Assembly (NCBI GenBank): GCA_002269645.1 | Contig: NIVC01000313.1 | Location: 1-64,000, forward strand | Direction: 5' to 3' | Length of the DNA: 64,000 bases | From: Macrostomum lignano | Taxonomy: Eukaryota | Part shown: one piece after another, positions 1-39,099 of the stretch | Layout of the letters: every line of letters begins with the position of its first letter | Position numbering within the stretch: position 1 is the stretch's first letter | The notes under the pieces: model-generated | The model's database searches: none | Told to the model about the DNA's origin: nothing | The model's input: only the letters and a program-made list of their open reading frames with translations | Made by a program: the position numbers and the translations under genes

Positions 1-1080
1 GGCGCTTAAAGGACCACAAAAGTGTGACTCTGTATATTTTCGACAGCTAAAGCAAACGGCTACGGTTTGTAGAAATGGCTATCCGCTTACCTGGCAGTAC
101 TGGAACCACAGTATTTTTCATTTTGTAGACGCTCAAATAATCTTTGCCACCACAAGATTTTGCGGCGTCTCCCGGACACCTAAGATCGCAAAGAAACTCA
201 TCCATCAGATTTGATGTGATTTGGTTTCCGCAGTAACAACTTTCTTTTTGTACACCAAAATATTTTTTACTACTTTTTTCACACTCCGATGCGCATAGAT
301 ACGGCTTCATGCTGGAGTCTTTAGCGACGAATCGGTTTAAAGCTTGCGTATGCTTAGAATGGAAATAACAACCCTTGTAGTATTCTTCTGAAATGGGTTG
401 GTAACGAGTTCAATTTTGATTGTTAGAAAACGTACCAGCAGGTTTAGAGAATTAATAGATACTTACTTTTCAGATCTGAAATTAAGTATGGAGCTCTGTA
501 ATTGTTTGTAAAATCTATATATTTAAAATACCGGTGCTCAGAAGTAAAACACAAAGTCAAAATAAAAATCAGACGCATAGTCAGAATTTTTTCACGCGGG
601 ATACAACTGGTGAGACTACTGATTATTAGTACTGCTTAAGGTAACTTTCATTAAAATTAAGATGTATGAGTACTACAATATAATACAGGGTGGCCCACGC
701 AACGCGCCAATTTTGTCAACATTTTTGCGAATGACACAAGTTATTAACGTTTTACTTTGAATCGCGCGTTACGTGGGCCACCCTGTATAATATACAATAT
801 ATAATAACTGCAAAGCTAATGCTAAAATAATTGATAAAAAACTTAACTTTGCAAAATTACCTTCACTTAGTAGCTAATCTAGCAAATAAATACCCATTTT
901 GCATTGGAATGACGAGTAGACACTTACCGTAGTGGCCTGAAAATTAAAGGCAGAGCCAGTTTAATTCTAATGCATAGCTTCATAAAATAAAATCCATACT
1001 AGTCTAGATAAAAGAGACTTACCTCCGAAGACGCTTGAACTCGCAGCAAAAAGGAGCAGAGCAAGAGTTGAGAACTGCAT
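1..1080 (-). CDS. Secreted WSC-domain protein, paralog A (multi-exon, 3' end off the left edge)
   Basis: Exons 1080-1023 (signal peptide MQFSTLALLLFAASSSVFG), 936-928, 475-467, 387-91 and 4-<1, all with GT-AG boundaries in phase 1. The 387-91 exon encodes YKGC...CASEC...YFGVQKESCYCGN...CDLRCPGDAAKSCGG, the WSC cysteine pattern. Confidence 0.8.
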
Positions 1081-2251
1081 TATTGCTTTTTTGCTTCGAG
1101 AGTTTGTTTTACTAGACTTCTCTGCGATCGTCGAAAACTTGATTCGGCAGCCTCGAGCCTCTCTCTTTTATCGAGCTAGATATTCTTGAAATTCTTGAAA
1201 TATTCCAATTTGAAAGTTTTCAAGTTAAAATTTTTATTGTAATTTTAACTTTCAGTTCGCATGGATTTAAAATGAATTCAATTAATTGGAATTTAAACTT
1301 GAATTCCATTCCTAGACATAGTTTCACTTGAATTTTTTATCGACAGCAAACATTTGCAACTTCGGAATAATTATCTCATTCATTTTATTTTTATCTGTAA
1401 ACTGCTTACGCAAAAAAATTTGATAACTAAGTATTATGTCATCGTTATTAAGAAAAGGCATTCCGATGAAAAAATGCCTTAATTACGGCATTGATGCCTT
1501 AATGGCAGAAGTAGCAGATGACACTAGCTTGTACAAGACATAGTACTTGCGCTTGTTTTAGCAACAAATTTTCTTGAGCTTTTTGGCAATGAAAGATAAT
1601 ATAGCCAGCCCATAGTTGAAGCATGAAGTGGAAATTCTATTTCAAAATTATGCTAATTGAAGTGCTGAAGATTTATTTAGCTACTAGGGCCCGTGCACTG
1701 CCACCTAAGCAAGTGGTAGCTCGTATCGGTTTGGTAATGGGTTACAGATCAGCTGTTTCTCAAGATACAAAACAGATTTACCTTACAATAAATTTTGGCT
1801 TAAAAACCCTGTAGGCTGTAAATAACTTTCAAAGCTTGAATAAAGAATTCAGCTTGCAAAGATGGAAGGAGAAAGGCCTTCCAGGCGCAGGAGGTACTTT
1901 GCTGTCGACTAAGCCCCGAGTGCTCGTCTGTCTTCGCAAGCTACTCAGCTGCACCTCCTGCACCGGCTGTGAGCAGAAAGTCTCCAGAGCAGGCGTAAGG
2001 GCCACTAGCAGTAAATATCGCGGTGTATCGTCAACCCGCAGAAAAGGTGTATCGAATCAAGGTCCTGCGCATATGCGAATGCGTTACAGCCACTTGGGCT
2101 ACTAAGTCGTATACTGTTGAGGTTGAGGGTCGACGTATTTTGCACGACATCGAACTGACCTCGAAATTTTTTTCGGCGTAACGATGTCGTAATTGGGACT
2201 TCCTTTCGTCGTTTTTTCGCCTTTTCGACTTAGTTTTGACCTAAATTCAAT

Positions 2252-2780
2252 TCTTGACTTCCTTGACTCAGCTGCATGGGATTCCGGGCATCCAGATTTA
2301 GCGAGGAAGCGTTGCCGCCTATTTCGCTAACCCATAGCGTCATAGCGATCACAGGCAGCGAGTGCTGCGGTGTCGCGCAGGGAGTTCCGGTGGTGCCGGT
2401 GTCCGCAGCGCGGTCCCCCTCCGGAGAGCCCAAGAGGTGAATGGACGCTCGCACGGTAGCCCTCAGGGTTACGAGCTGGCAGAGATTCTCGGGCCTGAAA
2501 ACTTTGGAGAGGTCCGGGTTTGGGCCGAGGTAGACGAGTGAAGGCAGGGCATTCATAGATGAAGTGCTCCGCATTCTCGCCACCGGAGAGCTGCAAAATG
2601 GGCGTTCCTCACTGCGGATTTTTCCCCTGGAGGTGGCGATGCCTGGCAAAACAGCTATGACCCGAGAGAGCCATGGTCACCGCCCTGAAGTCCTTTCGGT
2701 TGAGTCCCTGGTGGAGAAAGGACAGGGGGCAGCCACGTGGGATTTTCTGCAGTCAGGCGTTAGTCGAGCGTTAGTCCACC
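2252..2780 (-). mobile_element. 3' fragment of LOA/R1-like non-LTR retrotransposon
   Basis: Minus strand reads [20 protein letters not shown]...[17 protein letters not shown] (C-terminal CCHC-type motif), followed by an AAGTC-like tail. Similar to 40279-40700. Confidence 0.6.
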
Positions 2781-2829
2781 TCTCTCTGTGCTTTGAAGCA
2801 ATCCACTGGTTGATCAGACTCGAATGTGC

Positions 2830-3480
2830 AGAACAAGGTGAGTCGACTGGCTGACGAGGGGAAGCGCGTGGGGCTCCACATCAACTACGGCGAGACAGAG
2901 GTGCTGCATGTTGGCATTGCCAACTCTCCGGACGGCAACACCATCGCCCCGTGCAATCAGTTCAAATATCTGGGCCACTGATTCGGATGCCATTGTCAAC
3001 AACCGCAAGCAGCTCGCGTGGCGGGCCTCCCACCTTCTCCGCCCCATCTTCAACTGCCGGCTCGCCACCGACAGCCTGAAAGTCGGCCTATTTCGCTCGG
3101 CAGTTGAGACGGTGCTGACGAACGGGCTGGAAGCCGTCCCCATGACTGCCACTCGTGAGCCTGCCATTGCCAGTTCCTGCGCATTGCACTAGGCATCCGG
3201 TGAACAACTCTGCAAAAGCGACGCCAGATGTTGATCGACCACTGCCTGCGTGGCCACACACGGGGCACTGGGCCCTCGCTCGCCGACCTACTGCTCAGCC
3301 CGCCTTGTGGAAGACAAGGCAAGGCAAGACAAGCCGGGGGCCACGCTCGCTGCACCACTCTGACTGACACTTTTCTCTCGGACTTGCAGGCTATGGGCCT
3401 TACTCTCAGTCTGCAGCTAGGCTGGACTCAGCTGTTTGCCGCCAGCGGGTGCCTCGATGAACCTGGACTAGCGCCTGTTT
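2830..3480 (+). mobile_element. 5'-truncated RTE-like LINE fragment
   Basis: Reads [13 protein letters not shown]...CNQFKYLG (end of RT domain). Its 3' region (CTGCAGCTAGGCTGGACTCAGCTG) recurs near 30290-30330 on the opposite strand. Confidence 0.55.
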
Positions 3481-3989
3481 AATATAGCTTTTTGCAAGCC
3501 ATTTGAAATTAGGAGCAAGCAATTTAATAATCAGTGGGGAAACCCAGCGCTGAATGATAGATTTCACTGTACTCTATGGTCCAAACCATGGGCTTTGGAG
3601 CAACCAATTTAATAATCCTTAAACACCACACCCCAAGGATAGGAAGGCGGACGCAAGCGTTTGCGAAAATATAGTAGCGTGACAGTTCGAAAAGACACGA
3701 CGGTCCAAATTCCGAAAAAGGTGGAAGAAAATGAAGACGAGGGGGTGCGCAGGGTGGCTGGGGGATACGCTTGCAAACAAAGAGTAAAATAGACAGACAT
3801 AAAAACAGTACTCACTCAATAAAACAACAGTCATCATTGCAAACAAACGAAAAAAAATAAAAGGAAGAAATCAGAAACGCACGAGTTGAGAAAAACAAAA
3901 GTCTGTGCATTTGAGTTCAAGCCAGCAAAAAAGAGAGCAGACGACAAACCAACTGCTTCCAGGATTAAGGTTAAAGGAATAATTACAGG

Positions 3990-4990
3990 CATTGAGACAG
4001 TTTGCTAGCAGCCGCCAGCTGGAGGTCGAAGCCGTTCTCCAGCCCCAGGTACACCTAAACCGCCGAGCTCCGCCAGTAGCCAAGGGCCTTGACGACCGGC
4101 AGCGGCACATTGGCGCGGAACGCCAGCGAGGCACCGCTGCGTCGAAGGCTGTGAGGAGACAGACCGGTCTGCCAGGCCGGCACGGTGGACCACGTGGCGA
4201 AACAGGCAACAGAACCGGGTGCCGGTCAGAGGCGTCAGGCTGCTTCGGTAGGCGAAGAGGTGGGCAGCAGCGGCGCGGTCGGGCTGTTTGATGCGCAGGT
4301 GGTGAAGCAGCGCTGCCACCGGACAGAGCGGATGCTGCGCCGCGTGCCGGAGTCGCGGCAGGACCACGCGGTGCACTCACTGGCAGAACTGATTTGTCTT
4401 GGAGCGCCAAATGTGCAGGAAGGCCAGATCCGGTGATACTTGCATGTCGTCGCAGGTGACCGCCTCGCCAGCTGGTGGGAACGGCATCAGACAGCACAGG
4501 TTAACGCGGCGCGAGAGGCCCCAGAATCCGCCCAGGACCGCCGCCCAGAAGGCTGCATCTTGAGGCTGCTGCAGACGCAGGGTTCCTCACATTTTGAGGA
4601 GGTCACTCTGAGTGATGCGCACCTTGCGTGCGGGCGGCTTGGCGAGTTTGGCGATGAGCTCTTATTGCTGGCGCTGACTGCGGCTGAATGCAGGGCCGTG
4701 AGCCTTGATGTGCAGCGGCTCGATCTCGGTCGAGTCGCGGCGCCAGCCCATGATAGCCAGCTGGTTGTGTCTGGGCCGCGGATGATGCCGCAGCCGCTCC
4801 AGTTCGACGCGTCGGACTCGATGGCCCAGCTGGGCCCGGTGGGACGCCAGATTTTGCAGATCTTGGGGTCGTATATGATGGTTTCCGGAGTAAGTGACGG
4901 TGGCATCGAGAAGCTATCAACGGAATCGGACTACCAGATTTTTGGTCAATATCGTTGGTAAAGACAAACTGGGGCGTAACTGGGCTGCCC
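3990..4990 (-). mobile_element. Degenerate Ngaro/DIRS-like tyrosine-recombinase retrotransposon (RNase H + YR remnants)
   Basis: RNase H motif IESDASNWSGCG, then YR motifs AFWAAVLGGFWGLSR, RSKTNQF, LCPVAAL and SLRRSGASLAF...LGYWRSSAV*VYL, broken by stops and frameshifts. Confidence 0.75.
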
Positions 4991-5194
4991 GTCCACGATT
5001 CCACTTCGAGGACAACCAAGGAGAAGAAAGGGAAGACACTGAGGCTTTTTGATTTAGCTAACTCTTGAGAATGACCTAGCTCCGTGTAACTTGCAAACGG
5101 AAAAATCTATGATAGTTATCAGTCTTCTGGTTTTATCAAAAAATTCGCATCTCAGCAGTAGTTTAAACAGCAGCAGCAGCAGAGTACGCTGCCG

Positions 5195-5410
5195 GATCGC
5201 AAAAGCAACGTCAGATGGCACGCTTCGAAGCTTGGGCGCGAACAAAGGCCGCACCGCCGGCAGAGTCCGGGGCGCCGGCGTCAGCCAGCAGACAGTCGAC
5301 GTAGCGCCGTGTCCTCGCTTGTCCCCCCGGTAGGGTGCCTGCAACGTAAGTAGCAGCACCTCCTGCACCGGCTCCGGACAGTAGGCCTCGGCGCGGATGA
5401 CGCCGAATTG
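5195..5410 (-). mobile_element. RTE-like LINE 3'-end fragment
   Basis: Clear reverse-complement similarity to 29570-29735, the 3' end of the RTE-like copy. Confidence 0.55.
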
Positions 5411-5850
5411 TCATCCGAAGTTGTTTAAGTAGTTTAAAACAACAATAAAAACGTCTAAAACAATATACACTTATCTACCAGAGCGTTGTAGAGTATCATA
5501 AAATGCTACTGCGAGTAGACTAATGTGAACGGCGTAGCAAAACTACGAGCGTATGATGGAAGATGAATCATGTTGCGACTTAAGATGAAAGATGAGTTAT
5601 TTTACAACTTATGATGAAATATGAGTCATGTTACTAATAACATATCAAAAATTGTCTATAAATACAAACCAAAAATCCGAGCTGAAATCTCAGACTCAGA
5701 GCAGCCTCAAAAGATCTTGTGCTTTGCCAGAGCAACTAATCGAGGCTATATCTCTGAGAGATAATATTATCAATTGATAAGCGTTGTTCAAGTCTTTGTT
5801 ATTTCGATTAATTGAGAGCGATTTTATTGCCGGTTGTTATTGTCCAATTT

Positions 5851-6072
5851 GACTTCTGCACTCGAGGAATAAATTGACTTCTGCACTCGAGGAATACATT
5901 GACTTCTGCACTCGAGGAATAAATTGACTTCTGCACTCGAGGAATACATTGACTTCTGCACTCGAGGAATACATTGACTTCTGCACTCGAGGAATACATT
6001 GACTTCTGCACTCGAGGAATACATTGACTTCTGCACTCGAGGAATACATTGACTTCTGCACTCGAGGAATAC
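5851..6072. repeat. 25-bp minisatellite (GACTTCTGCACTCGAGGAATACATT), about 9 copies
   Basis: Head-to-tail units at 25-nt spacing with no spacers. Confidence 0.95.
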
Positions 6073-6989
6073 TTCGACGGAGTGTTACACTCTCACATTC
6101 GGCCGATTTTGGACTTCAAGGACTTCAAGAGGACTACTCCGGAGGAAGCGGACTTAAGAAGATGAGCTCAGTAGACACGCGCGACAAAGAAGAGGAGCCC
6201 GCAACAGTAAGTGATCACTGATTTTGTTCCCAGGCTTACGTGTCTGGAAGTGGGAGTTTTCGGGTGACTGATCACCACTCGACCAAACTCTTCAGCGTGT
6301 TTAAACTCATCTAAGCTTTTAAGCTTCAAATTATAGATAAAAATCTGTTGTCTGTGCTTTATCCTCATAAAATTGCGCGAAGGGTCTACGATTGAGGTGC
6401 AACAGAATCTATAGGACTGTGCTCTATTGGAAAAATGTTTTGTTTGCATTGTAATTTGATGTAGCCCAGGAGCAGGCAAACTTTTTTTAACTTAAGGGAC
6501 ATACATAAAATCTAGCGCATGTCTGCGGCCCAGAGAGAGAAGTTTTGAGAAGAGGGGAGAGGAAAGGAGAGAGGAGGGGAGAGAGGAGGCGAGAGAGGAG
6601 AGCTGAGAAGAGACCACTACAACAGGCCGCATTGATTATTGTGAAGTTGTGAAGTTTCAATGGATCCGAGGGCCGGATAGAGAGGCTTCGTGGAGTGCAT
6701 GTGGCCCACTAGCCGGAGTTTTGCGACCCCTGATGTAGACGGTGCGGAGGGCAAGGTGGTAAATTGGCCGAGGATTTATTAGCCAATAAGTTTGAACTGT
6801 CTGGCCAATTACAATAAAAATGAAAATGTATTTGAATTGAGCAAAAATTAGAATCAGAATTCAGAATTTGCACGCAGCGGTTTTTTATTTGCTGCGCCAA
6901 ATAAAAAAAGAAAATTCAAGCGGCTTTGATGAATAGCTGCAGTCAGTCTCCTATGGCTCGTATTAGCCAAAATTTATCACTTTGTTTTC

Positions 6990-13422: not shown

Positions 13423-13512
13423 ACTTACTTACTTACTACTGACGGGGGGCGCAGGCGCCGCGAATAGGCCGCGAGGCCCCTATCGCAACCCTAAGGTAAA
13501 GGAGCTTAAGGA

Positions 13513-17530
<4,018 letters not shown>

Positions 17531-17699
17531 GAATAATGTGCAGGTTAACTGGTTGGTTCGCCGGCGGCGGATTATTAATTTGGTTGCTGGTGGCAGTGGC
17601 ATCATTGGGCTGGCAAGCCAGGTTCGCCCTCAGCGCCCCGCTCCTAGTTGGCACGGGGTTGGGAACGGCATTACTCGTTCCCATAGCTATCCGAGCTCG

Positions 17700-18570
<871 letters not shown>

Positions 18571-20385: not shown

Positions 20386-21975
20386 TCAGATAGGTGTAGT
20401 AAGCAAATCGAATACTTCCATTGCCTTAGGGCCACCACACGTTTCATTTTCAATGCCTTTCTTGCATCGAGCGTTACAGAGCCTGTTAGGCGCTGCTTTT
20501 CCTTGCAGTATTCTATTGCCACAGTGGCACTCGTTGCCTTTTGCTAGACCAAAATATTTGTATGACCATTGCAAGCAGCCTTCAGCACACATTCTTTGGT
20601 TCATAGCCGCAAAATTTTGTTCCAACTCGAAGTCCAAGACTTTATCTTTTTTAAAATAATAACATCCCTTTGACGGTGCTGAAAAAACCACAAAAGTGTG
20701 ACTCTGTAAATTTTTGACAGCTAATAAATCAAACGGCTACGGCTGTCCACTTACCCGGCACTATTACAGCCGTAGTAGGTGGCACTTCGTAGATACTCAT
20801 ACCAAAACTGCCACCACAAGTTTCCCGGTTGTTTCCCGGACACCTGCGATCGCACTGTGATGGCAAAATCGGCTCTGATATGATCTGGTCTCCGCAATAG
20901 CAGTTTGTTTCTTGTACTCCAAAATATAGTTTTTTCATGTCTCGACATGCCCAAATGCATGAACGAAGAAACATGTTGGAGTCCTCTTTGGCGAATCTAA
21001 TTAGAGCACTTTCATGCTCAAAATGCAAAAAGCAACCCTTATAATATGTTCCTGAAATTTTTTGGTAAAAGTTCAATTATTGTTGGTAGGAAATGTACGC
21101 CAGTGCATTATAAATACATATGAATACAATTTCCAAGGCCACCGAGTCACAACACATCTGCAAGCAGATCAACTTGGCCGCATATAAGGTAGTGTTAGTC
21201 GCTGCGAAGCCCAGGGAGTGGTCGCTGTGGCGGCTAACTATTGATTCGAATAGTCAGACATATGCATTGGTTTTGCAGCTTCACTATGAAACAAATTATG
21301 GTCCATCAGAAGGGCAAGACGCATTATGAAGGTAAGGCACTCTCGCAAAGGCGTGAGGAAGATAAGGGTCAACACGAGAGAGAAGCTGAAGAAGCGCACA
21401 AATACACAACAGACTCAACAGGACAAGGAAGTCAGCGAGTCGAGTCAAAATGTCACCTGGCATAACGGACCAAATTAAGATGCATTCTATCTAAGTAGCT
21501 GGAGAATGCTTGCTTTTATAAATGCGTACACCTATTTAACGTCTAGCCTATTTAGCCTAGCCGTTTATATGTTTTGGGGTTAATAGATACTTACCTAGTA
21601 AATCTGAAATTGAGATATGGGAACTCGGTTATTGTTGGTAAAATAGCACCGCAAATACTCAGAATTAAAATACGAAATCAGTGAAATACATCCTAATTGT
21701 AAAGCCAAAATTAAATAAATGCGTAAATTAATTTTTACTTTCACTTAGTAATTAATCTATGAATAAATATCAATTGGCATTGGAATGACGCGTAGGCACT
21801 TACTGACGTAGCCTGAAAGTAAAGCCCGGTATAATTTTTAATGCAAATACACATAAGATAACACTAATATTATTTCAATTAAATTCATACTAATCCATCC
21901 CGAGTATAGAGGCTTACCTCCGAAGACGCTTGAAACCGCAACAAGAAGGAACAGAGCAAGAGTTGCAAACTGCAT
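20386..21975 (-). CDS. Secreted two-WSC-domain protein, paralog B (complete)
   Basis: Exons 21975-21918 (MQFATLALFLLVAVSSVFG), 21812-21804, 21603-21595, 21051-20755 (WSC1) and 20678-20386 (WSC2, stop). GT-AG boundaries keep the frame. Exon sizes 58/9/9/297 match paralog A. Confidence 0.88.
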
Positions 21976-22070
21976 GATTGCTTCAATTGCTTTTTTGCTT
22001 CGAGAGTTTGTTTTACTAGACTCCTGTATTCGTCGAAAACTTGATTCGGCAGCCTCGAGCCTCTCTTTCT

Positions 22071-22076
22071 TTTATA
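22071..22076 (-). promoter_or_regulatory. Candidate TATA box of WSC paralog B
   Basis: TATAAA about 100 nt upstream of the ATG, within an upstream block conserved with paralog A (which has GATAAA at the equivalent site). Confidence 0.4.
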
Positions 22077-22589
22077 GAGCTCGAATGCAAATTCTTGAAA
22101 TAAATTTGTGCCACGTTGCAAATTCCTACATCAACTACCACGTAGAAATTGAATTTTAGAATGTGAGTGGCTAAAAGTTTTCGTTCAACTTAAAGTTTTT
22201 CAACTCATTTTTATTTTAAATTTCAGGAAGTTGAAACTCGGATTCAATTACTAGAACTCTGTTTTAAGCGTTTTTAAAATAATTAAGATCTTCTTCAGAA
22301 ATAAAAAAATGCAAAAAATTCAGAAAAAATGAAAACCAAGTATTGAAAGCAACTACGAATGGTGTTTCAAAAGTATTGCCGCATTTCTTTGCACTACCTT
22401 TCATGATCATAAATTGAAACAAAGGGAATAATCACTGAATAACGGCTTTAACTTTAACTGTGGGCGAAAGTCAGAGGACAGGGATTTTCACAGCAGAGGC
22501 AAGTGACTGTTGCCATCAACAGAGACCCAGGGATCCAATTACAATTACAGCAAAAATACTGGAAGGACAACAGGAACATGCAATCCGAT

Positions 22590-24530
22590 GTTAATTAGAT
22601 ACCGGAGCTGGTGTTTCAATAATGTCCGAAATGTTGTGGAACCAGTTGGGCAGGCCTAGACTGCAACCTTCAAGCACCAAGCTGGGTCGCTATGCCAACA
22701 ACCACACATTCCAAGTACTAGGACAGAAGTGACAGAAGTGTCAGCGAAATCATAGCAGGGCGTGGTTTCTAGGCCACATTCTAGACAATGGTCGCATCTA
22801 CCCGAACGACGAGAAAGTCAGTGCAATCAAGGAAATGGAGCCACCAAAAAGTTTGGCAGAATTAGAGTCATTTCTGGGATTAGTAACATTCTGTTATCGC
22901 TTCATACCTAACTTGTCAGAAATGACAACCACACTGATTTAACTGAAGCAGAAAGGTTCAAAGTTCCACTGGGGTTCAGGACAAATGGAAGCTTTCAACA
23001 ACATCAAAAGGTTAATTTCAAAAGACGCAGAGTTGTCCGCTTACGATCCGAAACTACCCGTAGAACTGGAGGTTGACGCATCGAAGAAAGCCTTGGGAGG
23101 GGTACTGAGTCAAGAAGGTCGCCCGTACTCTATATCAGTAAAGCTCTTTCCAAAGCAGAAAAAAACTACTCGAAAATTGAGCGTGAGGCACTGGCCATAG
23201 TCTGGGGAATTCGCAGATGCCATCGATTTCTCTGTGGGAGGAAGTTCAGCTTGGTCACGGACCATAGATCCTTGATCTACATTTTAGCAGTCGACAAGGA
23301 ACTTCCACCCCGAGTGTCTGCCAGACTACAGAGAGATGAGCGATTTTCCTTACAGCCTACGACTATGCAATCCAGTACCGGAACACAAAGGCTATGGCTT
23401 CTGATGCGCTATCTCGACTAGTCAAGACAGGGTTAGACGAAACTACTCTGGAAATTGGAAACGTAAATGTGTTTTGCTCGCTCGTGTCAGCTAATGAGAT
23501 GGTACATGCTACGAATAGTTGTCAGGACATGCGGATGCTAAAGAAAGCTGTGACAACAGGGGACTCCAGGCATTAGGCACTGAGACCCTTCAAGCCTATC
23601 CAGGATGAACTAACTGTTCAAGATGATCTTGTTCTGAGGGGACAGAGAATCGTTGTTCCAAAATCGCTACGTGACAGAGTGATCAAGGCCGTTCATCAAA
23701 CACACCTTGGAATCGTCAGGTCAACGTCTTTGACCAGAAAAAGAGTTCTGGTGGCCTGCTATGGACAAAGATCTCGAGAAAGCGATTGGCTTGTGTAAAA
23801 TTTGCCGCTCTGCTAAGCCACAGAACCGAAATTTTCGTACATCTTGGCCGGAAGCAAATGTTCCGTGGGATCGAGTTCATGCGGATTTTGCCGGTCCCGT
23901 TGAGAACCTACATCTTCTAGTGATAGCAGACTCGTACACAGGCTACCCCGAGATCCACATCACTAAAGATATGACATCGCAAACGGTGATTCAATGTCTT
24001 CGACGAACATTTTCTCAACTGGGAATACCTCGCACCATAGTATCAGACAACGGTCCAAGCTTCACGAGCAGGGAGTTCAGAGAATGGCTTGATGGACTCG
24101 ATTGCAAACATTTGATGACTGCACCATACCATCCTCAGAGCAATGGAGCTGAAAGACTAGTACGAACACTGAAAGAGGCAATCAGAAGGTGGTGCTTCCT
24201 ATCGGGCAGAGCATGGCGCTCATCAAGACAGATGAGGAACAACCAAAGTACTGGAAGGTTCACTTTGACCAAATTCAGCCATATGAACAGCCAAGTGAGC
24301 AAGCAGACGCAATGGCAGACCAACCGCGGACGGAAGAGCCTAGACCGGATGCAGAAGAAGACGCAAGTGCGAATAGTCCGGAGCCAGAACCGGATGGAGT
24401 TTAATGGGCTAAGGCGCAGTCAGCGATTAATGCAAAAACCGCGAGTTGACTATGGTTGCTGATGCTGACTTCAGCAGCGAATTGACTGTTTCCAGTCACT
24501 AACTGGCGTTACTTATTGTAAGGGGGAAGA
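22590..24530 (+). mobile_element. Degenerate Ty3/Gypsy pol (protease, RT C-terminus, RNase H, integrase)
   Basis: DTGAGVSIM; FLGHIL...LESFLGLV; VELEVDASKKALGGVLSQEGRP; VHADFAGP...IVSDNGPSFTS...TAPYHPQSNGAER. The RT core appears to be missing. Confidence 0.85.
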
Positions 24531-26869: not shown

Positions 26870-28920
26870 GATAGCTGTAGGAATAAACTTGTCTCTGACT
26901 CTGATCAATTCTTTGCCCAGACTCACGCTATTGTGAGTAGCAAGAAGAACAGGTTGATTCATGAAACTTTGAAACAACTGAGGGCTAATAAAGAGATTAA
27001 GGTTGTTGGCTATGACAAGGGTTACGGAGTTGCCATTCTTGATAGTGATGACTATCATAGAAAGTTGAATGACATCGTTAGTGATCAATCCAAGTTTCGT
27101 TGCTTAGGTCCTAACGACGAGGTGACGATGATGCACCCTGTGCTAAAGGCTGAACGCAGTATCCAAACCTACATCAGAACTCAGGTGAAGAGGTATGTGA
27201 AAGAAGAAACGTACAAATGTATAATGCCCAGTGGTAGCCAGCCTGGCCAGTTGTATGGCCTGTGTTCAAAGTCCACAAAGAGGACAAGCCCCTGCGTCCC
27301 ATCGTGTCTATGATTAATACTGCTGAGTATGAGTTGGCCAGGTTTTTAGACTCTATCATCAAGCCAAAAATGCGCCAAGAGTTTAGTGTCAATTCTAACC
27401 ATCAGTTCATTGAAGCTCTGAAATCTGTGAGGCCGGACGGTAATGACAGTGTGTTCAGCTTTGATGTCACTTCGCTATTAACGAACATTCCTCTCAAGCT
27501 TGCTTTAGATCTTGCCACTGACGTTGTCTTTGTTGAGTCTCCTCCTGAAATACCTAAAGCGGTGTTTAGGAAGCTGCTGACTTTAGCTACTTCGGGTATC
27601 TTTCTCTTTCAAGACAAATACTATCGCCAAGTTGACGGGTGTGCTATGGGTAGCTCGCTTGCTCCAACGCTGGCTAACGTCTGCATGGCTTACTGGGAGA
27701 AGCAGTGGATGTCTCTTCCATGTGCTCCGACCTTTTATAGGAGGTATGTTGATGATATGGTACCTTTGCGATCTTCGATGAGGCTAGTAAGCAAAGTCAA
27801 TTTCTCCAAGCGCTGAACTCTACTCACCCAAACATTCGGTTCACCGTGGAAGGGGGTGATAAGATAAGAAGTTGCCCTTTCTTGACATTGAGGTTGAGTT
27901 GAGTCTGGACACTGTTAGCACTAAGGTGTACCGCAAACCCACGTTTACTGGTCTGATGCTCAACTTTAATGCGTTGTGGCCCGCGCCAATGGAAGGCTGG
28001 TCTTGTCCGTTGCATGATGCACAGAGCGTTCAGTATCTGTAGTACCTGGCAATCTTTCCACCAAGAAGTGGTCGAGCTCACTGACATTTTTCAACGTAAT
28101 GGTTTCCCTAGGGGTTTTGTTGGTAAAGTGCTGAACAGATTTCTGACTAAGAAAATGACTGAGTCTAGTTTGACTGACGAAGCTAAGAGGTCGAATTCCA
28201 GTGATGTGCTGATCAAACTCCCATTCCTTGGTGTCCCGTCCCTGAGTCTGGAAAAGAAGCTTAAAAGAACCGTCTTGAAGTATTTCAACTCTCGGGTCAT
28301 GGTTGTGTTTCAGACCGCCAAAATCGGCCAGTTTGTTAGCAGGTTGAAGTCGAAGGCCCCTAGAGCTCTGTCTGCTGGTGTCATCTATCAATTTTGTTGC
28401 TCTGGTGATCAGAGCATTTCCTACATAGGAAAAACCAAAAGGCACCTGTACACAGGGCTAGGGAGCATAGAATGAATAACTCTGCTGTGCATGATCACTT
28501 GCTTAGTTGCAATGCTTGTTGTGAGCATGAGCCGACTGAGCTTTTCATCGTTTTGGATAGATGTAAAATTGATGGCAAACTCAGAATGCTGGAAGCCTTG
28601 CTTGCAGGTGTAGGAGCCAGTTCACAGCTCAAAGTTTTCTAGGCTTGGTGTGGGTTTGCGGCTCTCTCCTCGCCATTATTGTTTGCTCTGTGTTTGTTTG
28701 TTCTTTGTGATGGCTAAAAATTTAATTTATTTTCGTCTCTTAATGTACAATTATCGACCGGACTGAACGTCTTATTGCCCTGTACAGTTTTTGATTTTCT
28801 TTATTTATTTAAATATACGGAACTGTTAATCATGAGTGCAAGCCCTGAAGATGACCGCCAGTGTCGAAACGCGTTGGCTGTAATAACAATTTACTCATAC
28901 GTTGGTGTTGGCCTTCATTT
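26870..28920 (+). mobile_element. Penelope-like element (RT + GIY-YIG endonuclease), frameshifted
   Basis: KVHKEDKPLRPIVS, FDVTSLLTNIP, GCAMGSSLAP, YRRYVDD, then GVIYQFCCSGDQSISYIGKTKRHL. Confidence 0.88.
28841..28879 (+). ncRNA. Candidate minimal type I hammerhead ribozyme at the 3' end of the Penelope-like element
   Basis: AGCC-CUGAAGA-U-GAC(loop)GUC-GAAA-CGCG-UU-GGCU: conserved core, stem I AGCC/GGCU, short stem II and palindromic ACGCGU stem III. Confidence 0.65.
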
Positions 28921-29029
28921 TTCTATTATTTATTAAACGAGCATCTCTACCAGATTGTGAGTTTAAAATGGTTTTATTAGAATATTACTTGAAGTAGTGC
29001 ATTACGGTATGACTAACGGCTCAATACAC

Positions 29030-30229: not shown

Positions 30230-30440
30230 AGTGTTACTAGACAACCGCACGCACAGGGGTTATTAAAGCACCCTCTGGTGGAAAATAGCTGTGTCCAGCC
30301 TAGCTGTAGATTGTGGGGTAAGGCCCAGACCCCGCAAGTCAAGGAGAAAATTTTGGTCAGAGTGGTGCGGCTTGGCCCCGGCGGAGTCTCCCACAGCCCA
30401 GACGCCTTGCTGAGGCGGCTCTCAGCGCCTGAAAACTTAA
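30230..30440 (-). mobile_element. RTE-like LINE 3'-end fragment
   Basis: Reverse-complement similarity to 3330-3480. Confidence 0.45.
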
Positions 30441-32574
30441 AAACAAAAACAAAAACAAACACAAAAAACAGCTTGCAAGAAGATTTTGGACAAAACCTAA
30501 TGGTTTGGTCTGTCACTTGATGATCTGCCACTATCTGTCACTGTGACTTGATAATGTTCTGTCACTTGAAAAAAAGTTTAAAATAATGACAAGACCGATT
30601 TAACATGAAAAATCGATTAATGCGTCGTTAGAGCAGCATGTGAGGCACAAAATATTGTGATTAGAACTTTCTCTGACACTTAAGAGACCCGATCACTGTT
30701 TTAGTGTTGAAAATCGTGAAATTTCCTATCTCCGTAGTGTATTATTTTGGTGAAACCTGCCTTTAAAACTATTTCTGAACAAAAAGCTTTATGAATATCG
30801 ATAGAGCTATAAGAAAGGCAGGCACAACATATCAAAAGATTAATACTGGATCTGCCTCCTCTCAAAAGCAATAACAATTTTTGTGCTGAAAAAATTAAAA
30901 CCTGCATTCTCTGTAGTCTTTTTTTTCGGCGAAAAGTTGCCTTCAAAACATTTACCATAGATTTCGAGTGTTGCGTCCTACTACTTAAGTTGTCCTTGCA
31001 CGGGTACACCGTGTTAACTTACTGTTCGAGCGAATCCCTCGAGCGGCTTCTAGCTCTTGCTACTAAAAAAAGAGGACGATCTGAACCACCAACTAAAACA
31101 ACGCCGCTTCCTCAAACAACAAAGCTCGTCGCGACGCTGCAGATTTTTGCAGACAAACTGGTAAAAGTTTTCGAACTTTTTATCGTCTGTTTGATAGAAG
31201 ATTGATACAAGATTGAAGCTGACACGCACAGCACGCACGCCGTCACTGGGTGCTCAAAGATTAAGAACACCGAGACGAGACCAATTATGGGTCTAGCTAT
31301 TGCTGCAGCAAAATTCGGTTCAGCTGACAGCTGACAAGTGTCAATAAGCTTGATAAAGCCAAAATCTTTGAATAGGAGAAAAATGGAGGCTACAAGCAAC
31401 TTAAAACCAATTAAGCCCCGGATATTAACAGCACACTGTGGAAATCTAGAATACTTCAAGCGTTGCTCACAGTTGCCGCCGTCCACCTGCAATCGAGTCC
31501 ATTATAGTTTTCCAAAAATCGTCCAATCCTGCGCGGACTGCGCCACTGGCATGTTTCTCTACGAAGTGTTAATGTTTTACAAAAAACAAACCATTATTTT
31601 TTTTACCACATTTAATATATTATTATTAAAAATTTTTGGGCCCATACCAGGGTATCAGTGTATATTTCTGGGAGCCGAAATTTAATCTTCAATGGAAATA
31701 CTGAAAGTTCAACCCACCCGTTAGCCGCATGGCCATGGTATATGACAGTATTCACTCAGGTTTGATTCACGTCACCCAGAAAACTAAACTATGGGCAAAT
31801 AATTTTAACACGTAAAAAATCAGCTCAGTTGTTCAAACTTTTCAATTGCTAAGAAACTCGAAATTGAGGCTTAGCCTTAAATAAGGCTTTGGATTAGTTA
31901 GTAATGGAAAATATTTTACCGAAGCAATATTCACACGAACTGCACGAATCAGAAAATCATCGCTTGGAAATTGCCAGGAGATTTCGGACAAAACTTAATG
32001 GAAAATATTTTCAAGTTAGAAAGTTATTTTCAGACGAGTTTCAATGCACTCTTATTTTTGATGGATGCCAAAAAGCAGTAAAATTTGCCTGCCGACGAAT
32101 TGTTTTAAATTTAAGTTTACAAGCCATAAAAATGCAAAAAATATCAATGAATAAAATGCGAAGAATTCTTCAGTAACTTAGATTGAAAGTTTTTATTTTA
32201 AATTCTACAAATCATAAAAAGTAAACTTGAACTTTTAAAATTTAAAAGTAAAAAGTAAAAATTTAAATTTACCATTTCATTTTTAAGCACTCAATCGGCG
32301 CATTGAAAAAAACCATAAAAATTCGATTCGATTTGAAGAAAATGAATTTCTCACCTCCCATTCTTTTGATTGAAACATGAATAATCTCGAAAACTTTCAA
32401 ATCGATAGATTTGTTAATTTAAACAAAATTTGCACTTCAAAATTGATGAAATTCATAATTAAATTACATGAGCACACTAGATACATTTTAATCATTGATA
32501 CTAAACATCCGTACTTTCAAACACAAATATTTGACTTAATACATTATTTTCCGAATACATTTTAAACTAGAACA

Positions 32575-32850
32575 ACCTGCACACAAGGCAGACACATGCG
32601 AAAAAACCTGCACACATGACATACACCCACCGAAACACCTGCACACATGGTAGAAGTAAGGTACCTTCTGCGTCCAAATTAGTTCTCTGCGCTGCTAGGC
32701 TGGAAGGCCGGGGAGTATAGTCCGGTCGCTAGCGGTCAGAGCGGTCGCTAGCGGTCGGTGGTCACAAAAATCGCTTCTGAGCCACCAGAAGGTGTCGAGC
32801 CTGGAGGAATCTTTTTTGGCATCCTGCCTGGTCAGGTGGAGCGGCCGGAT
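32575..32850 (+). repeat. Dispersed repeat matching 13090-13200 joined to 19545-19680
   Basis: Shared strings GGTACCTTCTGC, TTCTCTGCGCTGCTAGGCTGGAAGGCCGGGGAGTA and GGAATCTTTTTTGGCATCCTGCCTGGTCAGGTGGAGCGGCC. Confidence 0.8.
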
Positions 32851-33229
32851 AGTTTTCCTACGATTTTGCGGGCCACAAGGCCCTCGAAATCGCCAGTGTC
32901 TGTCTGTGATTTTAGTCTATGGCATTTTTTATCAAGTGAAGAAATACATTGGGACAAATTTTTGATTAAATACACATTTGATCTTTGTTCTTTTTGCATT
33001 TTTGTATTGTTTGTCAAGTGAGCTACTCTCTCCGAATGCTACTTTGATAGTTATCGTCGCTGCCCGGACGCAACTGTCCCCTTTCTTCGGAAGTTTGAGC
33101 GCTACACCACCGCCTTTGGCAAGTGCCGTCGGACGGACGGTCAGTTCATTCAACATTAAATTTAGCTGCAGCCTGAGCACCCTGGGCTCCTTGGCCACTC
33201 CCTGTGAGCCACACCATGTAAGTAATTCC

Positions 33230-33610
33230 CCTTGAGCTTTGACATCTCAAAATTTCCCTTATAAGCCACAACATTTCAGGAATTCCCTCATAAATCTCGT
33301 GACGTCTTAAAATTCCTCATGTGCTCTGACAACTTAACGATTCCCCATGAGTGTCTTGATACTTTGGAAATTCCCTATGAGCCTTGAGATACGAAATTTC
33401 AGCAATTTCCTGCCTAAGCCATGGACTTTCTCTTCCTAGCTCGTAATGAGCCTTTACATCTTAGCAATTCCCTATAAGCCTTGATATCGTAGCTATATTG
33501 CCTCCGTGAGCATTGAGAACTTGACAATGCCTCCACCAATGAGTCGCTTATGGCTGACAGGGCGATTACGTTATGGTTGAACCCTAACCCCAAACTTGAA
33601 CTTCATCCTA
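33230..33610. repeat. Degenerate GCCTTGACATCTCAG-AATTCCC satellite with a CCCTAA motif
   Basis: Same motif family as 42100-42850 and 45020-46600. Confidence 0.6.
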
Positions 33611-34399
33611 GCTTTCAGCTGCATCAATACACATGTTAATTATTTTATGTTTGACAGAGCGATTATTTTATGATTGGCATGGATGGCTGAGAATCGCTAT
33701 AATTATTCAAGTTATTTTACTTCTTTTTGATAAATCTGCATCAGTTTAAAAATTCTTTTGACTGGCTGGCCACGTCTTCCGAGCGGAAGCTCACTGCCCT
33801 GAGCGGCTGCACGAGGTGCTGCTGCCCAAGCTGCACAGACCGCGCAGGGCGAATAGCGAGAAATTCTGACAGGCTTTTGACCGATGCTGGCGCCCCGGAT
33901 CAAGCTGGGGGTGAGTTCCAACATGAAGTCGGCTAAAGTAAAAGTCTCAGGAAGCAGTTCTGACAGTCTTTATTAAGCTTAACTACGTCGTATATGATAA
34001 GACAATTGAATTATAAAATCCAAGTTGCAAATCAGTTAGTCTACTGACTGACTAAGGCGCTGCCTTAGTATGCAGTATTCATTATATTCCAATCAGAATA
34101 TCCCACCCATAGATCTTATATTCTTATGATCTTTGATCCCACCAATTCATTCATAGTGAAAACTCTGCTTAAACATTGCAAAAAAAGCATGTTTTTCCAA
34201 AAATGCGAGTAAAATCGTTCACATCGTCATAAAATAAGGCCAAATTTCGGTGATTACACAACATTACACAACAAATTTTGTTGTGATTACACAACAAAAG
34301 CAAGCCATCATGGCCCAGCTCGGACGAGCACTTGGCACTTCTTGGGGTATTTCCCCAAAGCAACTTTGGTGAAGCTACACTTCCGTAGTTAGACCTGCC

Positions 34400-35200
34400 A
34401 TTACGTACGCCTCGGTTGTCTGGGTTAGCGCTACCCAGGTCAAGTCATGCAGTTTTGGTCAACACGATCCAGGGCAGAGTGTGTAGGCTCATCTGCAACG
34501 CCACCAGGTCCACGCCCTTTGCCGGCATGGGGCCTTCCTTAATCTACCGCCTCTCGACCTCTTCGTCAGGGTTGAGGCGGCTAGAACGACGCGGCGTCCA
34601 TTGCCGGCGTCAAATTCCCCTACATGAGGGCACCTGCTAAGCGGAACTTCGTCCCGCATAGCGACCTGTGCCTCAAGATTCTCAACGAGTGTCAGGCCAA
34701 TCGCGTCTTCACCGATGGCAAATTATTGCCATTTCACGGTTTTCACGGCCATTTTGGCAAGACCGTTAAACTGCGGTGAATACAAAGGGGTCTCCATCTC
34801 TTGCACTCCATTGACTTCAAGCCAGGAAAGCAGAGGCGGGAGTAAACTCTGCTTCTTTGTCAGACCTAATCAAGTAAAGAAAGTACACAAGCAGTTTTAT
34901 GACTTCATTATACAGGATCGAGGAAGCCTCAATCCAGCCCGAGTATGTGCCCAAAACGATGAGGATATTTCCCGCGTCGGATATAAAATCCCAATCTATG
35001 TGAAGACGTTAGAACGGAAAAGCTCGTAGGTGGCCAAACGTATCTTGAATTTTGTAGGCGAGGTCGCAGCCGAGTATAAAGGAGACATTGGTGCACAAAT
35101 TTCTTGACATGGCGTTGCATTCCAGGCCACCAACAGGTCTGAACCAAAAGCCAAAGCGGTGGCATCCGAGTGTGTCATGGGCTGCTTAAAAAAGTCTCTC
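34400..35200 (-). mobile_element. Degenerate Gypsy integrase fragment
   Basis: CWWPGMQRHVKKFVHQC integrase zinc-binding region; the rest is heavily decayed. Confidence 0.5.
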
Positions 35201-36356
35201 TACGAAGCCTCGGCGGTGCATGTTAAACAAGCATTCTGAGACTTTTTTAAAGCCGATTCCGCTTGCGATCAGTTGTGGCTATCATTAGACAAGACGCGAC
35301 GGACGATTCTGGTCTGGTCTGGCTATTTTGGTCTGCTACTTTGTCGAGACTAGGAAGCAGTAAATGAAATGACTGCACATTTATTCAATTAGACTGCAAT
35401 GAAATATTGGATGTAGCCTTTATTCTAATGTATTTTCGCCGTTTCCAGATGTAGATATAGAGTCAAAACACTGCATCATGTTAAAAAACAAAATTTTGAG
35501 CAACCTGGCGAAAAAAGTATCAATTTAAGCGCAATTAACCCGAAGTTAGAAGCTTTTAAATTTCATCTGCAATGCAAACAAGCGTGCCTTCAAAAAATTG
35601 TCATAGATTTCGAGCGTTGCGTCCTTCTACATGTACTTAAGTAGTCTTTGGAGATTATCAAAGGATTTTTAAACTATCTGACGCACTCTGCTTTATCTGG
35701 CTGCGTATTTTATTGTTGTTGTTTTTGTTGTTTGGGACTATCGAAACAATGAAATAGCCAAAGAAAAGATGGCAGAAGGCATACTGATTTACAGAAACAC
35801 TCCCATCTACGATAGACGTATTCTCTCCATCATGCTGTATTGACACCCGGCCAAAGATTCCCTCCCTACTTATCGACAAAACCTTAACCCTGAGTGGCAC
35901 AGCACAATTCAAAAGATGGAGCAGCCCGCATCTGAGATTGACAAGACGGTGATGCAGCATCACGACCAAGAAGAGGTTATGGCCGAGTTTATATACATGG
36001 CCAGTTCGGTTTCAATACAGCCGACTGTAGCAGTTGAAAGTTCAGTTTGTCGGGTTAATGAGGATCAATGACCTGAAAGGAGAGATGGTCTAGATGATGA
36101 GTTATCTTATATATATCTATGACCCCGACCTAAAGCCTACGTGCTAAGAGACAGGGCAGACAAATTTACAGTAACAAAATATTGGCTCGTTATCAGAGCA
36201 GCCCACATATGTACGTGTACACTCCTAGATATAACACTCTGCATCAGCAGAGTTTGTCAGAGAAATTGTATCATCGGGAAACATAAAGGCTGAGATTGCA
36301 GGAAATCAGTTTATTTATTGGCTCACACAATATGAATGCTGTTTGGGGTTATTAGA

Positions 36357-39099
36357 TTATTCTGAGAAAAATATTTCAAACGCGAGCATTCCGATTTCTC
36401 CACCGCACTTTTCTTTTCTGTTGCCGGGACAGTTCAAGTTGCAGTATCGCTTATTAGTTAAATAGTCCTCCTTAACGATCTCGTTGCCACAGTAACATTT
36501 TGTGCCATTAAGAAGTCCGAAAAAGCTAGCAGTATATTGCTTGTTGCAAATTCTGGCACAGAATCTCTGATTCATGCTCACATCAGTGGCAGCCTGGGTG
36601 ACTAGGATGTTGTTGGAGCCGTCGTCGACGAAGCAACCCACCATTGGTGCTGAAAATGTTAATTAGTTTAGGTTGCAAAAGACCAGTGTAGCTAGTGACT
36701 TTGTGGGGATGGGTGCATTAAGAAATGTTGCTAAGGAGAGAGGGTGCTGTAGGAAACGATGCTTAGGAGAGGGTGCTGCAGGAGAGGGTGCTGTAGGATA
36801 GGGTGCTGTAGGAGAGGATGCTGTAGGAGAGGGTGCTGTAGTAGAGTGATGCTGTAGTGGAGTGATGCTGTAGTGGAGTGATGCTGTAGTGGAGTGATGC
36901 TGTAGTGGAGTGATGCTGTAGTGGAGTGATGCTGTAGTGGAGTGATGCTGTAGTGGAGTGATGCTGTAGTGGAGTGATGCTGTAGTGGAGTGATGCTGTA
37001 GTGGAGTTGTGTTTCAACAATAGCACGCGACGCACCAGGTATCATCAAGCTGGCAGTCCTAACTCCCTTGTAAATTTGCACATAACCCTTTCCGCCGCAT
37101 GTTTCGGCGGAGCTGCCGGTGCAGATCGTTTTGCAAAAGGATGGTAAAAGTTTGGGTGCCTTAATCCAGTTGCCGCACCAGCACTCTGAGCCCCTTTGTA
37201 GTCCGAAGTAAGCGTAGTCATTCAAGGCGCATTGCTCAGCGCAGACGTCCGCAGTCATTTTGGATGAGTTGTCAACTTTGTCCTTTAATGGCGCTACTTG
37301 TGCGTATGGGGCTTCTGGGAAGCAGCCTTGGTACTGATCTGAAACAGAAGTAAATAACAAAAAGTGATAGTCTATGTGGCAAGCCTTTTACTTCAGTATC
37401 GTCAGAACTAGACCCCAGAATATACATGACAATAATGCACTGGCGCACAGGGCATCCTCAATCAGCGAACTCAAAGACCAGTTGCACCTGCGTACTCTTC
37501 GGTAGCCTTTGAGATCCCCTGATAGAACCCAATTGAACGTGTGTGTGAATTCATCAAGCAGAGTATTCAACGGCAGAATCCGCCGCAGACAGTCGCTAAA
37601 CTGCGAAAAGCTTTTGTTGTTGCGTGGTAGGAAATCCACACGATTTTTTCGACGCCTTGTTCTGGAAATGCTCGTCGAGTCAACGGCCATGTTACTTGCG
37701 ATAGCAGGCTACACATGTCTCTGAAGCTCGATATGAACCATAGAGTTATGTGTTTTGACTCTACTCTTAATTTTCTCTCTGATTTTTCTTCTTTTTAGAG
37801 TGCTTGAGTTTTAAATGTTGCCAGTGTACTTCTAGAGAGAAATGATACACTTACAGTTTGAGTTGGTCTTGACTGAAATTGTTTTCGAATTGATTTTATT
37901 GCGGACCGGATGTAGTTCAAATGGTGATATTTTGTTAAGTATAGCGCATTTTGGATAACGTATTTAGCACCATGTCAGTCAGCGGTGGAAGAATTATCAA
38001 ACTGCAGAATTAGAAGTGCGCTACACTCGCAACAAAAACATTCATTGAAAACTGGTTTCGGTTCAAAATACGCTAAGGAAATACGTATACACTGACCTTT
38101 TGCCGGAACCTTGCTTGTCCGTTTTATAGGCTTTTGGGCACATTAGACAAAACAAATGCTTGCTTTATTTGCAATCCACAAGCTCATAACGCGATATTTT
38201 GTAAATTTAAAGCTAAAAATAAAAAAGACTGGTTTTGCCTAAAGCATTGAGAGCGAAAACCAGTCTTTAGCTTCAGTTGACCAACCTAAAAATCTTTTTT
38301 AGGATTACTAGCAATTTTCGTCCCCAGTTGCAGAGGCAAGAAAAAGGAATTATGCATGCAGTTTTTACAGTCAATATTGTTAGTTTTTTAGCTATCTAGC
38401 CTAAAATATCAGCATTATCTTTAAGCTTTGTACTTAACGCCATTCATCACGCGTATCCCTATTAGCCAAAGTTTTTATCACTTCAGCCAAGAATACGTAT
38501 CCTCATCAGCTAACGAAGTTTATCCAAATTAACCGACAAAATTTAATGTGAAGATTAGCCCAAACTGCCTAATTATAAAAGCAATAATTTCGTTTTTTGA
38601 GTAAAACGACTGTCCTTAACTGAACTGAGTGAATTATTCAGAGTGAAGCAAAAGGATAAAGCTACACAAATTCAACACAGCTTTCCGTTGCACAAAGTCT
38701 CACGGATGCATTTTGGGCTAAATGTGCCAAAATAGTTATTTAGCTTGTACGAGCGTATGTTTAATCCTATGTGGACTCATGGCAGTTAATTACTCGTAGT
38801 TAAATGTAGAATTGTCAGCATCTGTAATCTTAAGGCACGATCTCTTTCCTCAAGTTGACCGTAGCGAAAACAAGACAGAAATGAAACTACGAACTACGAG
38901 CGTATGTATCCATTTTGGCTTCTGTGGTGCAGTTTATGTATTTTATTCACGAGTGATTGTATTTAATTGTAGTTTTCCTGTGCATATGAATTAAAACAAC
39001 AGTTGGTAACTTACGGGACTCGACGTGTGTAAAGAAGTTGGCCAAGATGGCAGCGCTTATCAGCAAGACAGCAGTGCCCGTTGCTAAGGACCTCTGCAT
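36357..39099 (-). CDS. Secreted two-WSC-domain protein, divergent paralog C
   Basis: Exons 39099-39015 (MQRSLATGTAVLLISAAILANFFTHVES), 37872-37855 (18-nt microexon), 37338-37036 (WSC1) and 36649-36357 (WSC2, stop). All phase-1 GT-AG joins are in frame. Confidence 0.8.
36735..37007. repeat. Intronic tandem repeats: 15-nt GGAGAGGGTGCTGTA and 16-nt GTAGTGGAGTGATGCT (about 10 copies)
   Basis: Directly visible; lies between the donor at 37035 and the acceptor at 36650. Confidence 0.9.
37395..37724 (+). mobile_element. Tc1/mariner transposase C-terminal remnant in an intron of paralog C
   Basis: DNNALAH...RSPD-(frameshift)-NPIERVCEFIKQSI...AGYT matches the DDE motifs DNAxxH and SPDLNPIE. Confidence 0.65.

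Follow-up and report, generated by a model that had tools for sequence, protein, structure and literature searches.

Symmetric microexons and a variable N-terminal tail in a family of small secreted WSC proteins of Macrostomum lignano

Can exons of only nine nucleotides be regular parts of a gene, and do they serve to vary its protein by being skipped? The question is raised by a 64,000-nt stretch of the genome of the flatworm Macrostomum lignano (assembly GCA_002269645.1, contig NIVC01000313.1, positions 1–64,000; hereafter the window), whose minus strand carries three paralogous genes, A, B and C. An initial annotation of the window had proposed one design for all three, a signal-peptide exon followed by one or two microexons and then by WSC-domain exon(s). 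It had further suggested that the microexons can be skipped in combinations and that the products may recognise microbial glycans or act in adhesion. The reading that we favour, with a probability of roughly three in four, is that the genes belong to a seminal-fluid WSC protein family, that their microexons are constitutively included, and that the protein tail encoded by the microexons diverges between gene copies.

We read the minus strand and assembled the exons into spliced genes (Table 1; all coordinates are window positions). The exon models proposed for the three paralogs proved exact, down to the microexon residues GHY and DLK in A and GYV and NLL in B and the single 18-nt microexon of C. 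In each gene the signal-peptide exon ends in phase 1 and is followed by the microexon(s) (9+9 nt in A and B, 18 nt in C) and then by the WSC exon(s); every intron is phase 1 and every microexon length is divisible by 3. The microexons make up 18 nt of coding lengths of 666–699 nt (<3%), the other exons measuring 58–85 nt and 293–303 nt. Gene A is cut by the contig end, which is also the window start, and its second WSC exon lies beyond that end; this truncation explains why A has no annotated protein. A homology search with the truncated protein A gave no match, and TBLASTN across the window found no WSC paralog beyond A, B and C.

Since the frame stays open whether or not the microexons are included, an intact frame is no proof of them. 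They might be wrongly predicted, AG...GT pairs that occur by chance within one intron separating the signal-peptide and WSC exons. Exactly these residues are, however, present in deposited proteins. The spliced model of B is identical to PAA85598.1 (P0002, Mlig011934g3; 221 aa), and that of C matches Mlig003972g1 (P0006; 232 aa) with 100% identity and coverage, microexon residues included in both. If assembled transcripts underlie the M. lignano annotation, as we take it, these matches amount to transcript evidence for inclusion. Moreover, all five microexons are bordered by a TTTCAG acceptor and a GTAAGT donor, and these border patterns are confined to them in the 64-kb window: TTTCAG-N9-GTAAGT has four matches on the two strands, which are the microexons of A and B (expected 0.00), and TTTCAG-N18-GTAAGT has one, the microexon of C (expected 0.03). 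Homologous sites occur in other gene copies, described below. Deposited proteins, border-pattern counts and homologous copies together refute the false-prediction reading, to which we allow practically no chance. The microexons of A, B and C are genuine exons, symmetric and conserved in position with divergent sequence, as the initial annotation had held.

Table 1. Exons of genes A, B and C and shared 5' leader motifs in the window
Feature	Position	Strand	Length (nt)	Sequence or residues	Remarks
Gene A 5' leader motif	1128..1150	-	23	CTGCCGAATCAAGTTTTCGACGA	same 23-mer in B and in Mlig-pro5 mRNA RNA815_80.4
Gene A exon 1	1023..1080	-	58	MQFSTLALLLFAASSSVFG+1	start codon and signal peptide; phase 1
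Gene A microexon 1	928..936	-	9	GCCACTACG, G-H-Y	TTTCAG/GTAAGT match; position homologous to B microexon 1, intron flanks conserved
Gene A microexon 2	467..475	-	9	ATCTGAAAA, D-L-K	TTTCAG/GTAAGT match
Gene A WSC exon 1	91..387	-	297		Pfam WSC; Mlig-pro11 forward primer inside
Gene B 5' leader motif	22030..22052	-	23	CTGCCGAATCAAGTTTTCGACGA	shared with A and Mlig-pro5 mRNA
Gene B exon 1	21918..21975	-	58		signal peptide; phase 1; no differences among four B-type copies
Gene B microexon 1	21804..21812	-	9	GCTACGTCA, G-Y-V	TTTCAG/GTAAGT match; in PAA85598.1
Gene B microexon 2	21595..21603	-	9	ATTTACTAG, N-L-L	varies in near-identical copies (NIT, NIP)
Gene B WSC exon 1	20755..21051	-	297		Pfam WSC; in PAA85598.1
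Gene B WSC exon 2	20386..20678	-	293		with stop codon; Pfam WSC; in PAA85598.1
Gene C exon 1	39015..39099	-	85		signal peptide; phase 1; 93% nucleotide identity to C-type paralogs, omega 0.05-0.14
Gene C microexon	37855..37872	-	18	TCAAGACCAACTCAAACT, L-K-T-N-S-N	homologous 18-nt microexons in L005-L007
Gene C WSC exon 1	37036..37338	-	303		Pfam WSC; in Mlig003972g1
Gene C WSC exon 2	36357..36649	-	293		with stop codon; Pfam WSC; in Mlig003972g1

For comparison with B and C we retrieved the loci of related deposited proteins (L002–L008; the window genes are winB and winC). Three of these, L002, L003 and L004, are further B-type copies with exons of 58+9+9+297+293 nt. Microexon 1 is identical in all four B-type copies, and microexon 2 of L002–L004 is ATATAACAG (NIT) or ATATACCAG (NIP), versus ATTTACTAG in window B. 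Three C-type copies, L005–L007, have exons of 85+18 nt, the microexon encoding LRISKK or LMISKK, residues that are present in the deposited P0007 and P0008. A more distant paralog, Mlig026601g1 (P0135, L008), is less than 50% identical and has exons of 64+15+9+294+305 nt, again all phase 1. The layout is thus kept in nine A/B/C-type copies on seven contigs (A; winB and L002–L004; winC and L005–L007), and its presence in these copies as well as in the <50% paralog points to tiny symmetric exons after the signal-peptide exon as a family-wide and old feature, the number and length of which differ among subfamilies (9+9, 15+9 or 18 nt). The distance from the signal peptide to the first WSC Cys pair ranges from 10 to 14 residues across subfamilies; it is 11 in B versus 12 in Mlig-pro5, a WSC protein of the same species, as read from its published mRNA (RNA815_80.4; signal peptide …GVFA). 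When 1.84 billion representative sequences were searched with a profile, 9943 WSC proteins were recovered, headed by long multi-WSC proteins from fungi, oyster and a diplonemid; among the best 150 of these 9943, the sole new full-length relative with the small architecture was M. lignano Mlig026601g1.

Some peculiarities of these copies deserve mention. In L002, the NIT of microexon 2 creates an N-X-T glycosylation sequon in the mature tail, which the NLL of window B and the NIP of L003 and L004 lack. The C-type paralogs L005, L006 and L007 (P0007, P0008) are annotated as proteins of 149 aa that have one WSC domain and end in an unrelated sequence (…QGRLQQ.PTGPGCQ); either the second WSC exon was lost or a different 3' exon is used. 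The neighbour of Mlig026601g1 on L008 is another WSC gene (426-aa model, WSC exon at 1980–2258), upstream of whose WSC exon lies a candidate 24-nt symmetric microexon (L008 4890–4913, minus strand; TTTCAG|24 nt|GTAAGA).

Given that all microexons are multiples of 3 between phase-1 introns, every skip would stay in frame. They could then be cassette exons skipped in combinations to give several mature N-termini per gene, as in the micro-exon genes (MEGs) of schistosomes. In keeping with this idea, M. lignano is a flatworm, the residues in question are hypervariable, the products are probably gland-secreted, and Weber et al. (PMC5977470) allow that splice isoforms may be among their transcripts. 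Yet the full microexon set is present in every informative model (B, the L003 copy, C, P0007, P0008 and P0135), no skipped form was found among the informative deposited models and transcripts of the family, and the splice sites are full-consensus throughout, as one expects of constitutive more than of regulated microexons. The microexons appear to be ordinary exons that are constitutively included, as their uniformly perfect splice signals would also suggest. Combinatorial skipping seems improbable to us, and nothing in the deposited record bears out the proposal that it occurs.

Only one deposited model has a deviant junction. PAA54186.1 (P0001; L002 10001–11654, NIVC01002955.1) reads …SSEA|GTYYKGCF, has no start codon and is labelled 'partial'. 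We considered it as a possible alternative isoform and rejected this, because extending exon 1 by the one genomic base that follows it (G), and joining it to exon 4 extended by the three intron bases that precede it (CAG), yields precisely this model; it is an alignment artefact in which both microexons were dropped. It fits a source transcript whose unplaced stretch starts with G and ends with CAG, as GCTACGTCA+ATATAACAG does, and an aligner that is unable to place 18 nt as two 9-nt exons, and greedily extends the neighbouring exons, would produce just this junction. The corrected protein has 221 aa with GYVNIT. The earlier remark that exon-unaware tools miss these microexons is therefore borne out by a deposited protein, frameshifted exactly as if both had been dropped. 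Two other models of the same cluster, P0003 and P0005, are truncated and start at an internal Met, possibly also from dropped microexons. An exact look-up of ten hypothetical proteins (skip isoforms of B, C and L002–L004 plus full-length controls) in a collection of 15 billion proteins found none of them; the controls were absent too, so that this search is uninformative on skipping.

If splicing does not vary the tail, the differences between gene copies might. We aligned A and B region by region and compared the microexons with the intron flanks by a Fisher test. Identity is 94% in the 120 nt upstream of the ATG, 88% in the signal-peptide exon, 77% in the WSC exon and 83% (160/192) in the intron flanks adjoining the microexons, versus 50% (9/18) in the two microexons themselves, a lower value than that of the intron flanks (Fisher p=0.002). 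Of the 57 intron bases that can be aligned downstream of microexon 1, 50 are conserved, and the remainder of that intron is unalignable. The four B-type copies show 0/58 differences in the signal-peptide exon, 0/9 in microexon 1 and 0–3/9 in microexon 2; between winB and L002 there are 7/923 differences in introns, 1/590 in the WSC exons and 3/9 in microexon 2 (p=6.5e-4, post hoc). Between C and L005 the signal-peptide exon is 93% identical, the upstream intron 85%, the WSC exon 80% and the microexon 67%. The Nei-Gojobori ratio of nonsynonymous to synonymous substitution rates (omega, dN/dS) is 0.05–0.3 for the signal peptide; for the WSC part it is about 1 in B-type pairs with measurable dS and 0.6–1.3 in C-type pairs, and values of 3.6–3.9 in two pairs involving L004 rest on one synonymous change. 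In the microexons, every change alters the residue. Small as the counts are, they point consistently one way: no other part of the protein varies as much as the tail that the microexons encode, and its variation lies between gene copies.

A separate pattern was seen in L003, which differs from window B, L002 and L004 by about 9% in the WSC exons and about 3.3% in the introns (Fisher p ~1e-6), with dN/dS of about 1. This could be due either to fast or relaxed WSC evolution or to gene conversion homogenising the non-coding parts.

Divergence need not mean selection for diversity. The microexon residues may be a functionally neutral spacer, gains and losses of introns in the linker having left tiny exons (9+9, 15+9, 18 nt) that diverge under relaxed constraint. 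That the linker length to the first Cys pair varies by subfamily, that GHYDLK, GYVNLL and LKTNSN have no common motif, that omega is already about 1 in the WSC domains of the family, and that the hexapeptide lies outside the folded domain would all be expected of such a spacer. It would not, however, lead one to expect frame, position and perfect splice signals to be kept across paralogs that are less than 50% identical, or three differences in the nine bases of microexon 2 where introns differ by 0.8%, which is above the neutral intron rate, small as these numbers are. We regard the spacer as a possible but rather doubtful explanation, and continue to favour a constitutive tail that diverges between copies.

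The place of the hexapeptide in the protein follows from the domain analysis. The Pfam WSC search that the initial annotation had proposed found PF01822 twice in B (95 bits, 3e-27), twice in C (115.7 bits, 1e-33) and once in the truncated A (52.8 bits, 4.7e-14), all above the gathering score of 27.8 bits that we took as the cut-off for membership. The N-termini of A, B and C are hydrophobic, and exon 1 closes with small residues in positions −3 and −1 (VFG|G, VES|L); judged by eye with the −3/−1 rule, the signal peptide is probably cut at or near the end of that exon. A family profile matched the WSC domains of yeast Wsc1 (PDB 7pz2, E=7.7e-11) and of KREMEN1 (5fww and others, ~1e-8). The crystallised 7pz2 construct starts YEYVNCF, which aligns with YxYxGCF at the start of the large exon, so the microexons would encode an N-terminal tail outside the WSC fold, together about six residues after the predicted signal-peptidase site. 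AlphaFold2 on B, with a 7-sequence alignment, gave a mean predicted local distance difference test score (pLDDT) of 39, an unusable model. We also considered cleavage of the hexapeptide as a propeptide; A and L005/L006 have a KK ahead of the WSC domain, B and C have none there, and we rejected this idea for want of a conserved processing site. Yeast Wsc1 and human KREMEN1 share the cysteine-rich WSC domain (PF01822) with A, B and C, but there it sits in membrane sensors or receptors, whereas the flatworm proteins are soluble secreted tandems of two WSC domains of ~220 aa.

Phase-1 introns after signal peptides, with symmetric 1-1 exons, are said to be a general pattern of metazoan secreted proteins, reportedly described by Tordai and Patthy in 2004 within the exon-shuffling literature. 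The window genes share this pattern in that a phase-1 boundary closes the signal-peptide exon near the predicted cleavage site and the later exons are all 1-1; they differ from it in exons that are extremely small (9 nt) and encode no domain.

What might such proteins do? The suggested role in microbial glycan recognition or adhesion gives way here to another, since the literature on relatives points to prostate seminal-fluid candidates (PMC4490696, PMC5977470, PMC6953679). Arbore 2015 (PMC4490696) describes RNA815_80.4 (Mlig-pro5) as prostate-specific with two WSC domains, and its knock-down abolishes prostate antibody staining. Weber 2018 (PMC5977470, Table S1) lists many prostate-limited seminal-fluid candidates with WSC-type matches, of ~0.9–1.1 kb. 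Patlar 2019 (PMC6953679) gives primers and gene IDs for 18 Mlig-pro genes studied by RNA interference (RNAi); knocking down Mlig-pro11, one of these, did not change fitness significantly. The WSC candidates among the Mlig-pro genes (Mlig-pro5 = RNA815_80.4, Mlig-pro11 = RNA815_15432.2, Mlig-pro4, Mlig-pro46 and others) come from the same species as A, B and C and share with them an apparent signal peptide, two WSC domains and a size of ~220 aa; B (Mlig011934) and C (Mlig003972) are absent from the 18-gene RNAi list. The forward primer for Mlig-pro11 has an exact 24/24 match in gene A (352–375) and at least 4 mismatches to the B-type copies; the site for the reverse primer falls past the end of the contig. 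None of the 18 primer pairs fits B or C. All three genes belong to an expanded M. lignano family of small secreted two-WSC proteins, several of which are prostate-limited seminal-fluid candidates. Judged from these sequence relationships, their most likely role is that of prostate-secreted seminal-fluid proteins, an assignment that stands on good ground for A, is plausible for B and is less secure for C; for B and C, expression in the prostate is a prediction.

The 5' leader bears on this kinship as well. The 120 nt upstream of the ATG (A 1081–1200, B 21976–22095, minus strand) are more alike than any coding exon, and within them lies the 23-mer CTGCCGAATCAAGTTTTCGACGA that A and B share with the Mlig-pro5 mRNA; a search for it in the C-type genes found it absent. 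A read-through open reading frame (ORF) in P0004 suggests that the upstream stretch of A and B is transcribed as 5' untranslated region, and it may be a shared regulatory leader.

The initial annotation had likened the genes to schistosome MEGs. These are described (PMC10526429) as having a signal peptide, 10–20 exons of 6–81 bp, mostly multiples of three, that form almost the whole coding sequence, and documented alternative splicing. The likeness stands as far as exon symmetry and the signal peptide, which is a predicted one in the WSC genes, go: both groups belong to the flatworm phylum, have an N-terminal signal-peptide exon followed by very short multiple-of-three exons (here 9, 9, 18 and 15+9 nt between phase-1 introns), and share gland-secreted products and fast-evolving encoded sequences. 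It fails for the number and share of the microexons, since the WSC genes have only one or two, 18 of 666–699 nt as opposed to 10–20 forming most of the coding sequence, placed on two folded WSC domains and with no sign of skipping. Lacking the 10–20 short exons, the WSC genes are not MEGs. MEG organisation has been proposed as a neodermatan gain, with the warning that traits of this kind could go back further, to the 'turbellarians' (PMC4398949), and our locus is at most a faint hint in the latter direction. One could go further and see in the symmetric microexon cassette after the signal peptide an old flatworm way of placing a hypervariable N-terminal module on gland-secreted proteins. In Macrostomum its driving force would be sexual conflict over seminal fluid, and it would foreshadow or parallel MEGs on a small scale, possibly with condition-dependent skipping; we hold this to be a long shot. 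The MEG resemblance is limited, and by itself does not change views on MEG origins.

How the favoured arrangement might work can be sketched. The consensus TTTCAG acceptors and GTAAGT donors, with the conserved intron sequence adjoining them, would hold the microexons in the mRNA; together the microexons would supply a tail of about six residues at the N-terminus of the mature protein, just outside the WSC fold; and diversity of the tail would arise by rapid divergence among the many gene copies rather than by exon skipping, with the signal-peptide exon and 5' leader kept nearly constant. Any function of the tail is presumptive.

Several points weigh against this account. The rate comparisons involve 9–18 nt per gene and are partly post hoc, and gene conversion of the flanks could exaggerate the contrast between them and the microexons. 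Inclusion is read from deposited models, one per gene, rather than from sequencing reads, and minor skipped isoforms are possible. The case for prostate expression consists of a 24-nt primer match for A and paralogy for B, and is weaker for C, which has no shared 5' leader. Finally, the putative cleavage site comes from inspection by eye rather than from SignalP.

The genes themselves and correct models of them are already in GenBank, and the family is already known as a source of prostate and seminal-fluid candidates. Literature searches on microexons in Macrostomum and on the gene IDs returned nothing relevant, and we found no description in the searchable literature of the microexon architecture, its conservation among paralogs, the hypervariability or the effect on annotation, which are new as a modest detail. 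The practical consequence is that 9-nt exons break transcript-to-genome alignment. One B-type model is frameshifted on that account and two more are truncated at internal starts, so that counts and sequences of seminal-fluid genes in M. lignano are affected. A near-invariant signal peptide and leader, a hypervariable hexapeptide and WSC domains with omega of about 1 fit rapidly evolving reproductive proteins, and the hexapeptide could be swapped or deleted at little cost in studies of seminal-fluid function.

Two introns of the window genes have features of their own. A 16-nt tandem repeat of ~13–17 copies (36738–37007) fills the gene C intron between the WSC exons; it is open in frame on the gene strand, which leads an ORF finder to stretch WSC exon 1 into a spurious 209-aa ORF (36731–37360). 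Intron 2 of gene A holds a near-perfect palindrome of ~105 nt (684–790; arms ACAGGGTGGCCCACGTAACGCGC / GCGCGTTGCGTGGGCCACCCTGT) without counterpart in the gene B intron; it looks like a small insertion resembling a miniature inverted-repeat transposable element.

The three genes lie in a repeat-rich cluster. Retrotransposon fragments occur among them at 14905–18317 (minus strand), 23761–24462 (plus) and 27262–27816 (plus), the types being a LINE-like endonuclease and reverse transcriptase (Exo_endo_phos_2, RVT_1), an integrase core (rve, 4.6e-18) and another RVT_1. Farther along, an interstitial telomere-like (CTAACC)n tract at 42220–42292 is followed by ~3 kb of C-rich minisatellite arrays (43850–46590) with units of ~15–31 nt, which account for the extreme GC skew (−0.6) at 44–46 kb.

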